Sequence record: PQ464590.1
Strand: one strand, 5' to 3'
DNA: 64,000 nt
Part shown: in pieces, positions 11,159 to 45,170 of the stretch
Layout: each line of letters opens with the position of its first letter
How positions within the stretch are numbered: the stretch's first letter is position 1
Program-made: the position numbers and the translations under genes
Notes under the pieces: model-generated
Seen by the model: only the letters and a program-made list of their open reading frames with translations
Database searches by the model: none
Told to the model about the DNA's origin: nothing

Positions 11159-11188
11159 ATTATATCACATAATTGAGAGATGTCCCAA
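11159..11188 (-). promoter_or_regulatory. promoter of the TTGGGA-N18-TATAAT class, driving natV-nadV
   Basis: TTGGGA CATCTCTCAATTATGTGA TATAAT. Confidence 0.7.
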
Positions 11189-22865: not shown

Positions 22866-22895
22866 ATTATATCACATTTTACAGAACCATCTCAG
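22866..22895 (-). promoter_or_regulatory. variant of the N18 promoter class
   Basis: CTGAGA TGGTTCTGTAAAATGTGA TATAAT. Confidence 0.55.
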
Positions 22896-37205: not shown

Positions 37206-37744
37206 TTACGTATCCTCTCATATACGTCCACGAACATCTTATACTTCAGTACTTCATCATCCCCAGGAAGGGCTAGTCTGAAATTATCGAAGTCCTGATT
37301 TCGTGCACAGTTACGCATCATGGTTGAACTGAATACGCTTTCTTCTCTTTGAGAACCAGCCATTACAGTACTAATATTAGCGAAATTGTATAAGGAACCG
37401 TTGTACTTGTCAAGAGTTTTTTGAAACTCATCTTTGCGGTCAGAACCGCCTACGAAAATTATATTGTGGTATTTCCCATCTAAGTCCGTCATGATGTCGA
37501 ATAGTTGGGATTTAGAACCTTGCAGTACTCTACCAATGTCAGGATAGAATCCATCAATGTAGTACTGCTTCAGTTCAAGAGGAAGTGGATTCTTAACATC
37601 ATCCACTGTTGCACTAAGGAATAGTTTTAGATCCGCATTTAGATCCTTTTCTAACTGTAATGCATGTTCGAACACATACCCATGACCAATGTGGACAGGA
37701 TTCATGCGTCCGAACATAAAGATACACGTATCTCTTTTAGACAT
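37202..37744 (-). CDS. HIGH-family cytidylyltransferase-like protein
   Basis: FGRMNPVHIGH, KNPL, GGSDR, SSTMMR. Confidence 0.85.
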   Translation of the reverse strand: MSKRDTCIFMFGRMNPVHIGHGYVFEHALQLEKDLNADLKLFLSATVDDVKNPLPLELKQYYIDGFYPDIGRVLQGSKSQLFDIMTDLDGKYHNIIFVGGSDRKDEFQKTLDKYNGSLYNFANISTVMAGSQREESVFSSTMMRNCARNQDFDNFRLALPGDDEVLKYKMFVDVYERIRK

Positions 37745-38255
37745 TCTTCATCACCAAGCCTAGAGTCTTTAAGTACTGAATCTTAGAATCAGTTAAATTC
37801 TTGTCCAGTACTATCAAGCATGAAGGGAAAGGAGCCGAGTCTTGTTTCTCGTTCTCATTCTTATTCGGGTCAAAGAACTTCAATCTACCTTTGATAAAGC
37901 AGATGCAGTCACAAACCTTAGCTGCGTACTTCTGGAATGCTACAGTATCGGTCCTTGAAGGAACTAACAGTACTACAGTAGCACCTTTATCGTACGCGTC
38001 TACAGCTTTAGCGAGCCACGTTTTTAGGTCATTGTAAGGGGGATTTAGCCAACAAATTTCAGTACCCCAATCTTGAATTAGACTATTGTCGTCAGGAGTG
38101 AAGTACTTTGAACATAATGCACTGTCTTCAAGACAAGCTACATCTAGTGTGAAATGCCATTCGGCATCTATATCTTTGAACAAATCTCTAGGAGTATTCC
38201 ATGTCTGCGATTTAGAACTGAAATGGACTCCATGTTTATCTTTTTTCTCATCCAT
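37737..38255 (-). CDS. phage DNA N6-adenine methyltransferase
   Basis: WNTPRDLF, FTLDVAC, WLNPPY, LVPSRT, FIKGRLKF. Confidence 0.9.
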   Translation of the reverse strand: MDEKKDKHGVHFSSKSQTWNTPRDLFKDIDAEWHFTLDVACLEDSALCSKYFTPDDNSLIQDWGTEICWLNPPYNDLKTWLAKAVDAYDKGATVVLLVPSRTDTVAFQKYAAKVCDCICFIKGRLKFFDPNKNENEKQDSAPFPSCLIVLDKNLTDSKIQYLKTLGLVMKNV

Positions 38256-38269
38256 GAGTTGTTAGTGTC

Positions 38270-38794
38270 CTATTGTAAACAGCACGCTACAATATCATCA
38301 AATCTCTTTGGAACGTAGTCGTACTCATCTAAAAACTTGAAATAAGCACCATATTGCATATAGATATTGAAATGTTCATCCTCTCCAAATTCATATTGCA
38401 TGAACTCTTCGTTGGAACCACTGAAATTTACAAAACTTCTTATGTCTGCGGTGACTTCTTTACTGTCATTGAAGTAGCGGACTTCAGCCAGTACGCCAGC
38501 ACTTGTGTAGCGAGTATACTCGCCAGATAGTTTGCCGTCTTTATTTACCACGTACCTGGAACTAATCCCTCCGTGGTTATACCTCTCTTCTCTGTAATTT
38601 CCGTATTTGACAGAGAAAATAACAGGGAGTTTAGTAGGTCTAAACGAAATCGTACCTAGTACTTCTCCATCTAGGTATTCAGTAATGAAACTGGGTTTCG
38701 AGTATTCCCTCTTGATTTCATATCCAGTAAAAGATGCTAGATGTACTTCATCAAGGGATTTCCCTGTTAGGTCTTTATATTGTTTGGTGGTCAT
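38270..38794 (-). CDS. MORN-variant repeat protein with a divergent FQ-like motif
   Basis: GKLSGEYTRYTSAGVLAEVRYF; GEDEHFNIYMQY. Confidence 0.65.
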   Translation of the reverse strand: MTTKQYKDLTGKSLDEVHLASFTGYEIKREYSKPSFITEYLDGEVLGTISFRPTKLPVIFSVKYGNYREERYNHGGISSRYVVNKDGKLSGEYTRYTSAGVLAEVRYFNDSKEVTADIRSFVNFSGSNEEFMQYEFGEDEHFNIYMQYGAYFKFLDEYDYVPKRFDDIVACCLQ

Positions 38795-38799
38795 TGGTA

Positions 38800-39463
38800 T
38801 TCTTCTTCTCTGATATTTCTAAATGACAAGAATCACTTCACTCCGTTTCAGTGATTCAGTCCTAATTCTATTAAGAAACTCACTATCGTTCGTTCTTAAT
38901 GAATCAGTACTCTTATAAGTTATTAAGAATAATACTTGACGAGGTTTTGTTGATTCAATTTCATCCCCCACTGGGGAGGGAGAAAAGAGGTTTGACGCTG
39001 GTATGCTTCATCATTTTATGTCACGAATTTCTATAAGAACGGAAGCGGGTTGCCCTGTTTCTTCCTATCGCGGTTCTATGCAACGGTCGTAGTCTTACTA
39101 CGCTTCAATACGTACCACATAAACAGTACTGTACTGTATCCTCAAATTTTGGACGCAACTAGGGCTAGCCCTTAGATGGTCGCTTTAAAATCTGAAAGAT
39201 TCCCTTATACATTTGGTAAGGTGCGATCCTTATATGTCTATCATGCCATAAGCAAGCCGAGTTCTGTCGTATTAAATTGACTCGGTTTAATCAGCCGCAT
39301 TGCCGTGGGAGGTACAAACTATGCCTACACCTAACGGGTTTCTTTTGCTGAACGTACTTGAATGCGTACTCATCTGTCCTCTACATTTTCGAGTGAATCA
39401 GGTTCTGGTCGTACTAGTAATAACTAGTCATTCAAAAATAGGTTCGGGACCGGAAATGGTCCC
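38800..39463 (-). ncRNA. candidate structured ncRNA, long leader or origin-like region
   Basis: About 660 nt with no credible minus-strand gene; several hairpins; predicted start at a GGGACC hairpin about 7 nt below a strong -10. Confidence 0.45.
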
Positions 39464-39469
39464 AATTAT

Positions 39470-39499
39470 ATTATATCACATTTTTTGGATTTATCCCAA
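39470..39499 (-). promoter_or_regulatory. promoter of the TTGGGA-N18-TATAAT class
   Basis: TTGGGA TAAATCCAAAAAATGTGA TATAAT. Confidence 0.75.
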
Positions 39500-39505
39500 A
39501 AATCT

Positions 39506-40309
39506 TTACAGTGCTTCAGTACTGATCCTGTGCATATACACATACATCCTACGATAAAATTCAATCTGATGCGGAGTCAATTCATCTTTACAGGCAAGAT
39601 AGTATTCACCATCATCAAGGTACTGATTGAATAAGAAGTTCAACGCATCCATACTAATATAAGTAAATGGTTTGCGATCTGAATCTTCTGCTAACATTGG
39701 AACATTTATAGAAACTTGAACAGTAGGAAATATTTCTTCTTCCTTTTTCTGTAGTACTGTATTTAGATCCGAGCAAATTTGGTAATATTTCGTGTACACC
39801 CAATGCTCAATTATAGGTTTACAGTACTCATGGAGATTCGAATAGAATGCGGGTTCAACCAGTATCGTAACGTTATCACGAGAATTCGTAGGATTATTGT
39901 TTACACCCCACTCTATCATCTGTGCTGACTTTACTGAACCACCCCACGATACACCCTGAGATTTAGAACCGTCATCGTAGGTAGCATTCTCCGCTGAACT
40001 TAGAGAAGAGCCGAATACGTAATTCTCCGTGTACAGGTTATACACTAGATAATCACCATCCATGATACCTTCCATCATGAACTGGAAACCAATGTCATCT
40101 GGTATATCGATTAGTGTAGTTTTGGTTTCCATATGATAACTATCGACGCAGTACTGCCTGAATTCCTCTCGGAACATCTCTTTGAATGAATATAATTCAT
40201 GATGATGACGTTGTGTAGTATAGGAATTGTGTCCTACTGGATCACTTCCTACACAATCTTCACCCCAGCGGTTAGGGTCGTATGTTGATATGCAGAACTT
40301 GATTCTCAT
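39506..40309 (-). CDS. hypothetical protein with an FQ-like motif near the N-terminus
   Basis: PDDIGFQFMMEG. Confidence 0.75.
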   Translation of the reverse strand: MRIKFCISTYDPNRWGEDCVGSDPVGHNSYTTQRHHHELYSFKEMFREEFRQYCVDSYHMETKTTLIDIPDDIGFQFMMEGIMDGDYLVYNLYTENYVFGSSLSSAENATYDDGSKSQGVSWGGSVKSAQMIEWGVNNNPTNSRDNVTILVEPAFYSNLHEYCKPIIEHWVYTKYYQICSDLNTVLQKKEEEIFPTVQVSINVPMLAEDSDRKPFTYISMDALNFLFNQYLDDGEYYLACKDELTPHQIEFYRRMYVYMHRISTEAL

Positions 40310-42250: not shown

Positions 42251-42280
42251 ATTATAGCACATAAACGCGATTCATCCCAA
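42251..42280 (-). promoter_or_regulatory. promoter of the TTGGGA-N18-TATAAT class
   Basis: TTGGGA TGAATCGCGTTTATGTGC TATAAT. Confidence 0.7.
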
Positions 42281-44175: not shown

Positions 44176-44661
44176 TTATTCTTCTTCGTACAGCTTCGTG
44201 GCTTCACGAACACTTTCAATAGCGGCCTCAAGAGTAGGCACATGTACTTTCTTATCAGTCTTCGGTGCTGAACGTAGCACTTCAAGAACTTCTAAGTATT
44301 TAGGTACGATATCTTTCAGGATTCCGAAGTCAAAATCGTACACCGTGCTCAACTGGAATGTCTCTGCACCAGAGATGTACAGAGAACTAACATCTTTACG
44401 GAAGTCAGTATTGTACAACGCGAGCTTCAGTTCACGTGGAATAACCAAAGAACCAGCCTGAACCTCAGTAGGAACCATAGTAATACTCGCGAACTTATCA
44501 TTATCCACGTACAGAAGACGTAGACTATTCAAACCGATAACAACAGTAACGCCATCGTTGACGTACTGAATATGATCATCCGTTAGTGTAACGTTGTGTG
44601 CTAGTGTAGAATGAGAATTTAGAAAATCAATAATCTCATTGAAACCGTCAATGTGGGTCAT
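44176..44661 (-). CDS. FQ-motif family protein
   Basis: GAETFQLSTVYD. Confidence 0.75.
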   Translation of the reverse strand: MTHIDGFNEIIDFLNSHSTLAHNVTLTDDHIQYVNDGVTVVIGLNSLRLLYVDNDKFASITMVPTEVQAGSLVIPRELKLALYNTDFRKDVSSLYISGAETFQLSTVYDFDFGILKDIVPKYLEVLEVLRSAPKTDKKVHVPTLEAAIESVREATKLYEEE

Positions 44662-45170
44662 GATAGATCCTTTCTGATAACATCAATTAGTTTGACCAGT
44701 ACTTCACGACTAATAGGAAGTATTGGGTTTAGTGTTTCGAACTGGAAGAAGTCATACTCATTCATCAGTTCAAATGGGACTTCAATTTCGAAGTCATCAT
44801 AGCCATAATCATGACTAGGTTTAGTTTCACGAAGCCGAACAACTTCTTTCTTCGGATCTACATGAATAAGAAACTCTGCATGTTTAGTACATTCAAGTCC
44901 AAGTTCATTGTACCCGATATACACTGTAGTATTATCTTTTGTTTTAGTACCGTCTGAATCACGCTCATAAACAGTATGAACTTCTAAACGCATCAATACT
45001 GAACCATATTGAGCAGTAGTGTTTCGCCCGTCCCGCGTAATGTATAATGGAATACCATCATAGTACTGACACGCTCGAAAATCTGACCAACAATCAACTA
45101 CGTGCTTAGTGATCTCGTCACATGAAGATTTACGTGTTCTTGGTTTGAATAAACGATATAAATGAGGCAT
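44658..45170 (-). CDS. FQ-motif family protein
   Basis: NEYDFFQFETL. Confidence 0.75.
   Translation of the reverse strand: MPHLYRLFKPRTRKSSCDEITKHVVDCWSDFRACQYYDGIPLYITRDGRNTTAQYGSVLMRLEVHTVYERDSDGTKTKDNTTVYIGYNELGLECTKHAEFLIHVDPKKEVVRLRETKPSHDYGYDDFEIEVPFELMNEYDFFQFETLNPILPISREVLVKLIDVIRKDLS

Follow-up and report, generated by a model that had tools for sequence, protein, structure and literature searches.

The final 64 kb of Erwinia phage Hallingskeid (PQ464590.1, 366,158 bp) contain a gap of 711 nt between two genes, and the question raised by this locus is what the phage encodes there. These 64,000 nucleotides (record positions 302159-366158) are referred to as the window, and coordinates are window positions unless stated otherwise; window 38300-40000 corresponds to record 340458-342158 with 100% identity. 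The gap (38795-39505) extends from the stop of the upstream gene at 39506 to the ATG of the downstream gene at 38794. The region is conserved, non-coding, structured, present in multiple copies and linked to a promoter, and its fold contains two pseudoknots. The gap is read here, with a probability of about 0.6, as the gene for a non-coding RNA of approximately 0.65 kb which works through its fold and is expected to act in trans as a particle of RNA only or as a ribonucleoprotein (RNP). The RNA family is without a known relative and as a kind of object is closest to GOLLD and ROOL. It is interpreted as a new class of large, ornate phage RNA that probably acts in trans.

The initial annotation had singled out the locus as the largest non-coding gap in the window, and this was confirmed, the next largest internal minus-strand gap being 331 nt. 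All genes surrounding the locus are on the minus strand, as are all RNA, promoter and gene features described below. No minus-strand open reading frame (ORF) of 60 amino acids (aa) or more was found in the gap and none above 50 aa over the RNA region. The GC content is 39.4% in the gap and 42.5% in the conserved core compared to 33.1% in the other minus-strand ORF-free gaps, in agreement with the earlier remark that it was higher than in other intergenic DNA. The boundaries first proposed (38800-39463) enclose the right region but end a little too early on the 5' (promoter) side.

The GenBank annotation of PQ464590 places five plus-strand ORFs of 31-78 aa over the RNA, within 38823-39557, and by that annotation the region would code for small proteins. 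This explanation is effectively excluded. The ORFs are on the strand opposite to every neighboring gene. Their reading frames are broken by stops or frameshifts in phages EJP2, Munch and 121Q and in one metagenome relative, and they are therefore regarded as gene-caller artifacts. Most curated relatives have no annotation at all at the region. Conservation takes the form of invariant blocks of 8-15 nt between variable stems, with no codon periodicity. The sole recurring coding candidate, a mini-ORF after GGGGGG-AUG, was rejected as a 1-nt indel between copies shifts its frame.

When a 1.7-kb query was used in megablast, other phages matched solely in the non-coding part, and outside Hallingskeid blastn matches never extended into the flanking genes. 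The core (approximately 38930-39402) matched 71-72 phage records at 68-82% identity by blastn. These were phages of Escherichia (121Q, PBECO4, EJP2), Salmonella (Munch, 7t3), Klebsiella, Erwinia, Yersinia, Serratia, Pectobacterium (CBB), Cronobacter (GAP32) and Xanthomonas, all of the RaK2-like jumbo group. RaK2 itself gave a blastn match of only 50 nt, while a profile search with nhmmer gave a full-length divergent copy (E = 6e-42) behind a TGTGATATAAT element. No RNA is annotated at the homologous loci in any of the matching records, which are empty there or carry a "hypothetical protein". Relaxing the motif in a scan of IMG/VR brought in further RaK2-like contigs only, and six chance matches were rejected by nhmmer.

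The single-sequence fold of the minus strand had an energy of -183 kcal/mol compared to -152 ± 6.5 kcal/mol for shuffled sequences (z = -4.7). Covariation among homologous regions had been proposed as a check on the initial annotation, and it proved to be strong. RNAalifold predicted 64 pairs from 30 unique copies, with compensatory changes in 26 of them, and a consistent helix set emerged when 51 unique copies (minimum identity 54%) were scanned for covariation. Helices were counted in an alignment of 44 sequences including RaK2 and XaC1, using 15 curated helices comprising 72 pairs. In these helices 95.4% of cells were paired compared to 79.5% in shuffles and approximately 40% when the partner was slid by 1-3 columns. 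Double-sided changes were present in 48 of the 72 pairs. The covariation score was 0.434, compared to 0.165 in shuffles and at most 0.124 when slid, and none of 500 shuffles attained any of the five observed measures. Two helices (39369-39367/39356-39354 and 39084-39080/39053-39049) cross others and are therefore pseudoknots. G-U pairs frequently alternate with G-C or A-U pairs, which identifies the minus strand as the RNA strand. By the features that operationally define large ornate structured RNAs (more than 400 nt, non-coding, covarying helices, pseudoknots and conserved unpaired blocks) the RNA falls within that class. The earlier proposal of a large structured non-coding RNA under a promoter is strongly supported by its occurrence in approximately 72 genomes, the absence of a conserved ORF and compensatory changes that include the pseudoknots.

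The promoter occupies 39470-39499 and consists of TTGGGA (39499-39494), an 18-nt spacer and the extended -10 element TGTGATATAAT (39480-39470). It is of the sigma-70 type, with 10 of 12 consensus matches plus the TG extension in a consensus scan, in line with the strong promoter suggested earlier. Five copies of the 30-nt motif lie on the window's minus strand (2610-2639, 11159-11188, 22866-22895, 39470-39499 and 42251-42280) compared to 0.04 copies expected by chance. It is therefore a phage promoter class, TTGGGAyA-N11-TGTGmTATAAT, rather than a chance match, and probably marks the transcription units of the gene-dense terminal region. Upstream of the RNA, TGnTATAAT was invariant in 30 of 30 aligned copies. 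Each RNA copy is immediately preceded by a phage sigma-70-type promoter, and a nearly identical one is shared among the three Hallingskeid copies.

Beyond what the initial annotation had noted, the RNA belongs to a multi-copy family: every RaK2-like jumbo phage examined has between two and five diverged copies, in different contexts. The best match in GAP32 was in a context unlike the syntenic locus in CBB, and its use as a query revealed a second set of loci. Paired loci were located at 32.4 and 336.3 kb in CBB and at 90.4 and 192.8 kb in 121Q. Motif scans of IMG/VR and metagenomes, confirmed by nhmmer, gave four loci each in 121Q, CBB, fHe-Yen9-04, Serratia BF contigs and several metagenomic contigs of 355-371 kb. 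For GAP32 the count is three or four, since two of the four matches may be one copy, and for RaK2 it is two. Hallingskeid has at least three copies, the additional ones at approximately 196.5 kb and 119.5 kb of the record (L194:2425-3021 and L195:2430-2962, respectively) and on the same strand as the window copy. One of these (E-type) is flanked by the genes for endonuclease VII and the baseplate hub and runs antisense to the two of them. The other precedes a small ORF and a gene for an ADP-ribosylglycohydrolase. Besides the three located copies, blastn gives a fourth place in Hallingskeid; no copy was present at 38-52 kb of the record, where one had been guessed. No paralogue of the RNA was found within the window, where the promoter alone is repeated. 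The other Hallingskeid copies are also overlain by tiny annotated ORFs, mostly on the opposite strand (L194:2459-2963; L195:2477-2979).

The copies fall into paralogue classes. The window copy is of the A class, in which the RNA is always followed by a phrog_16210 protein of approximately 175 aa and then by Dam, as seen in EJP2, Munch, 121Q, CBB and XaC1. In all genera examined, phrog_16210 homologues were located downstream of the A-class RNA. The classes are syntenic across genera, and the duplications therefore predate the divergence of the genera. Copies of classes A, B and D extend, with no intervening terminator, up to the ribosome-binding site of a gene in the same direction. E-type copies are antisense to both neighboring genes, and the terminator hairpin that follows them has a T-run scoring on the opposite strand; this arrangement between endonuclease VII and baseplate hub genes is common to Munch-like and 121Q-like phages. 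The A-locus copy of XaC1 has its own terminator before the next gene.

The RNA is built around a core of three helix-closed domains, followed by a C-rich/G-rich hairpin, an invariant GGGGGAUGAAA...CUCGUCA and a 3' module. Homology by blastn and nhmmer and the alignments place the conserved core of approximately 500 nt at 38936-39435. The invariant blocks in its 5' part are GAUGAGUA (39374-39367), AGAAACCCGUUAG (39343-39331), GGCAUAGUUUGUACC (39325-39311) and CACGGCAAUGCGGCU (39307-39293). Those in the middle are GAUAGACAUAUAAGG (39242-39228), UAAGGGA (39207-39201), CGUCCAAAAUUUG (39155-39143) and CGACCGUUG (39089-39081), and those in the 3' part are CAACCCGCUU (39052-39043), GGGGGAUGAAA (38969-38959) and CUCGUCAA (38943-38936).

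Domain 1 (39354-39435) comprises helices 1-4 of the 15-helix set. It contains P1 (39435-39429/39364-39358), a hairpin (39428-39423/39418-39413), a helix at 39401-39399/39376-39374 and the first pseudoknot, the loop of which holds the 3' strand of P1. The register of P1 was read directly for the Hallingskeid sequence. P1 replaced a 5' GAC/3' GUC helix predicted by RNAalifold, as its covariation is much better. Compensatory changes in the domain include CUGAAUGA/UCAUUCAG versus CUGUUUGA/UCAAGCAG and GUA/UAC versus GAA/UUC and GCA/UGC. In domain 2 (39217-39351; helices 5-8) a helix at 39351-39347/39295-39291 encloses another at 39337-39334/39306-39303 and a hairpin with a conserved CAUAGUUUGUA loop, and further hairpins are present at 39285-39280/39262-39257 and 39232-39229/39220-39217. 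These helices were 91-99% paired, with double changes in 11 of 19 pairs. Domain 3 (39015-39123; helices 9-14) is formed by a long-range helix (39123-39117/39021-39015), a hairpin (39102-39099/39091-39088), the second pseudoknot and further helices at 39072-39068/39026-39022, 39065-39061/39045-39041 and 39038-39036/39032-39030. It was 97-100% paired with compensatory changes in 22 of 29 pairs. Domain 3 is the most conserved part of the RNA and the sole part detected in RaK2 by blastn.

The C-rich/G-rich hairpin (38965-38979; pairs 38979-38975/38969-38965) leads into the invariant GGGGGAUGAAA. As helix 15 it was 98% paired, and its changes were one-sided and C/U only (G-U wobble). The 3' module (38830-38903) consists of two hairpins, H1 (38903-38866) with loop GAACGAUAGUGA (38891-38880) and H2 (38857-38830) with loop GAAACGGAGUGA (38849-38838). 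Across copies the module has one to three long hairpins. Between orthologues the stems are wholly different but remain paired, while the loops retain GAACG-N-AGUGA. The strict pattern of the loop motif, [G/U/A]AACG-N(1-4)-AGU[G/U][A/G], was found in 27 of 51 copies, RaK2 included. A pairing of the 3' loop GAACG with a CGUUC of the core was dropped, no covariation being seen by eye.

Peripheral modules are swapped or relocated between copies. The CAUAGUUUGUA-loop hairpin is exchanged for a longer unrelated module even among close copies, and the block CGUCYAAAAUUY sits in a different helix in D-type copies. Large tertiary-folded RNAs typically exchange modules in this way while their core stays constant. 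D- and E-type copies carry a terminator-like hairpin with U7 inside the RNA, between CAGCGUCA and the C-rich/G-rich hairpin (L194:2887-2904; alignment columns approximately 575-605). It may give a shorter isoform or serve as a structural element.

All five stems listed in the initial annotation are present: GGGACC/GGTCCC (39446-39463), ACTAGT/ACTAGT (39413-39428), CCGAGT/ACTCGG (39257-39285), AGGGCTAGCCCT (39161-39172) and CGTAGT/ACTACG (39088-39102). Their conservation differs. The stems at 39413-39428, 39257-39285 and 39088-39102 are consensus helices with compensatory changes and the 5' hairpin is kept in orthologues, but AGGGCTAGCCCT is conserved only in close relatives.

From its spacing to the -10 element, transcription is predicted to start at 39463-39464. 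The first 18 nt of the predicted RNA form the hairpin GGGACC-AUUUCC-GGUCCC (start and hairpin, 39446-39464), which scored as terminator-like and is followed by UAUUUUU (39440-39434). Orthologues retain a hairpin and U-run of different sequence at this 5' position, where the Munch record annotates a terminator, and the hairpin is absent from other paralogue classes. It probably also terminates transcription arriving from the upstream gene. No minus-strand terminator was found between the RNA and the downstream gene (38795-38930), and the window RNA is therefore probably made as the 5' part of an operon transcript. The downstream gene (38270-38794), identified from the ORF list and a PHROG match, encodes the 174-aa phrog_16210 protein, and the Dam methyltransferase gene (37737-38255; PHROG and Pfam matches) follows it in the minus-strand operon. 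The phrog_16210 protein had no Pfam match; its language-model features weakly indicate MORN-repeat/YwqK-like proteins.

A search of Rfam 15, also proposed at the outset, gave no match over the whole window at gathering thresholds, including GOLLD, ROOL, OLE, HEARO, group I/II introns, RNase P, transfer-messenger RNA (tmRNA) and 6S. At E values up to 10 only chance-level matches of 13-18 bits were obtained, and no family recurred over eight homologous loci. ARAGORN predicted no transfer RNA (tRNA) or tmRNA in the window. A group I/II intron was rejected: the flanking ORFs belong to separate PHROG families, each copy has its own promoter and no intron model matched. A hammerhead-like reading of CAGAUGAG...GAA was rejected, since an A stands at U4 and the "GAA" varies and is itself paired. 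Reading AGAAACCCGUUAG as RNase P-like was likewise dropped, as no model matched and its pairs are local. No publication describing the RNA element turned up in literature searches. Candidates upstream of Dam methyltransferase genes are mentioned in a large IMG/VR screen for short structured RNAs (PMC10690425), which may contain fragments of the present family.

The RNA resembles GOLLD and ROOL of phages and prophages (PMC12286853) in being several hundred nt long, non-coding and phage-borne, with covarying helices, pseudoknots and conserved unpaired blocks. It differs from them in having no Rfam match, in the absence of a tRNA gene from the 64-kb window, and in forming a family of two to five diverged paralogues per genome in jumbo phages of Enterobacterales and Xanthomonas. 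The RNAs ncRNA001-004 of phage PA5oct are comparable in another respect: PA5oct is a jumbo phage distantly related to the RaK2-like group, and its genome has four such ORF-free regions of 236-619 nt (PMC7318152). Two of these long non-coding RNAs, found by RNA sequencing (RNA-seq), make up 1-5% of phage reads in infection (PMC7318152). No structure or covariation has been reported for the PA5oct RNAs. Neither nhmmer with all filters off nor blastn detected similarity between the PA5oct RNAs and the present family, and no invariant motifs are shared. The PA5oct RNAs also showed no similarity among themselves (nhmmer, blastn). They are an analogy only. The phi29 pRNA is likewise a phage-encoded structured RNA and acts as a multimeric particle, but it is 174 nt long, single copy and unrelated to the Hallingskeid RNA in sequence and context.

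As a cis-acting leader, the RNA would be the folded 5' untranslated part of the downstream operon, serving in antitermination, RNase protection, translation control or ligand sensing. The initial annotation had suggested such a leader for the methyltransferase operon, and the window copy is indeed upstream of a co-directional operon and, like the A, B and D classes in general, abuts a ribosome-binding site without a terminator between. HK022 put, EAR and riboswitches similarly place a structured RNA between promoter and operon, as at the window locus. Those elements are 60-200 nt long and always upstream of their targets, whereas the Hallingskeid family is approximately 650 nt long and one of its classes has no downstream gene. 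The internal hairpin and U7 of D- and E-type copies, ahead of the conserved 3' part, resemble an expression platform. The window copy has no such hairpin, and its 3' hairpins do not overlap the ribosome-binding site, which is unpaired in the model. E-type copies are antisense to their neighbors and the XaC1 A-locus copy stops at a terminator, and therefore the family is not only a leader. The downstream genes are also unrelated between classes, and approximately 500 nt with invariant blocks far exceeds known leaders. A pure leader is thus contradicted for the family, and the leader explanation as a whole is considered unlikely.

The dispersal of two to five copies per genome, each with its own promoter, would also be expected if the RNA were an origin-priming transcript in the style of T4 oriF/oriG or ColE1 RNA II, with a persistent R-loop priming the leading strand and the copies representing several origins of the 366-kb genome. 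Those transcripts are promoter-driven and non-coding, and T4 has several origins. ColE1 RNA II, at approximately 0.5 kb, is similar in length to the Hallingskeid RNA and needs its fold. The motif TGAAACG, which precedes CBB-type copies of the RNA, is the -35 element of a promoter class reported in CBB and GAP32 upstream of DNA-synthesis genes in a paper that does not describe the RNA (PMC5259590). However, the Hallingskeid RNA is conserved in the pattern of a tertiary-folded RNA, with selection on RNA pairing (G-U wobbles, pseudoknots) and approximately ten invariant single-stranded blocks, features which known T4 origin transcripts do not need. Cumulative GC skew has no inflection at the locus (39 kb), and neither an AT-rich unwinding element nor a 3' end point was conserved among the copies. 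A priming role, the other alternative named in the initial annotation, is rated improbable. A selfish or mobile non-coding element, such as an intron remnant or a promoter-carrying cassette spread in the genomes, would likewise be dispersed and multi-copy with its own promoter, and its modules could be exchanged between copies as observed here. Against this, the syntenic classes show the duplications to be ancient and stable, the structure is under purifying selection in every class, and neither an Rfam intron match nor terminal repeats, target duplications or an associated transposase, reverse transcriptase or endonuclease were found. A mobile element is very improbable.

Several points weigh against a trans-acting particle. 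The RNA resembles GOLLD and ROOL only in kind and is not related to them. No terminator separates the window RNA from the downstream gene, and the RNA may act in cis there. Neighboring genes differ between paralogues, and no partner protein, ligand or target was found. A transcript was not demonstrated in the four RNA-labelled wastewater runs examined. Two of these also cover the flanking genes and are therefore probably DNA. The other two yielded tiny contigs within the core only, which prove nothing because the runs were selected by that very stretch. Wastewater metatranscriptome assemblies share 0.3-0.5 of words with the 121Q copy of the RNA. The RNA is predicted to be transcribed.

If the RNA is a trans-acting particle, host RNA polymerase would initiate near 39463, and the 5' hairpin would stop read-through from the upstream gene and cap the 5' end of the RNA. 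The core would fold into its three helix-closed domains, with the invariant unpaired blocks making tertiary contacts or forming a binding surface or active site. The two 3' hairpins with GAACG..AGUGA loops may serve as a protein-binding or processing site. At the window locus transcription would run on into the phrog_16210/Dam operon, while in another paralogue class the RNA would stand alone. More tentatively, and with less than even odds, the core may be catalytic or self-assembling and the paralogues may act jointly, as a hetero-oligomeric particle or as a set of ribozymes or RNPs with different specificities, needed for the infection cycle across the RaK2-like clade. Antisense targets within the window did not exceed chance. 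A link to a sigma factor was rejected, as a putative sigma gene is upstream of the RaK2 copy but the upstream proteins in Hallingskeid are unrelated to it.

Only very few RNAs as large and structurally complex as this one are known from bacteria or phages, and each such class is either a ribozyme or RNP core or still a prominent puzzle (GOLLD, ROOL, OLE). Several anciently diverged copies per genome are unusual for a structured RNA and hint at sub-specialization or co-assembly. The phages carrying the RNA can be cultivated on E. coli, Salmonella, Klebsiella, Erwinia, Yersinia, Serratia, Cronobacter and Pectobacterium, so that genetics, RNA-seq and cryo-electron microscopy are directly possible. 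The annotation of dozens of phage genomes, which have spurious small ORFs or nothing over the RNA loci, is also corrected.

Erwinia phage Kaldavass (PQ464595), a second jumbo phage of Erwinia aphidicola with a genome size near that of Hallingskeid, contained a B-type copy (44428-44915) with 96.5% identity to a metagenomic B-type query. Xanthomonas phage XbC2 matched the metagenomic B-type query at 96.9%. No B-type copy was found in Hallingskeid, and the two Erwinia phages therefore appear to be different lineages of the group. Among 185,579 bacterial and archaeal genomes there was one match, on a 185-kb contig of Silvania hatchlandensis (NZ_JAMGZK010000045.1), which is probably a co-assembled jumbo phage rather than a chromosomal copy. 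Near-identical sequence (0.85-0.94 of words) was present in metagenomes from wastewater, sludge, landfill, groundwater and food fermentation, and Hallingskeid-like phages, or at least the RNA, appear to be widespread.

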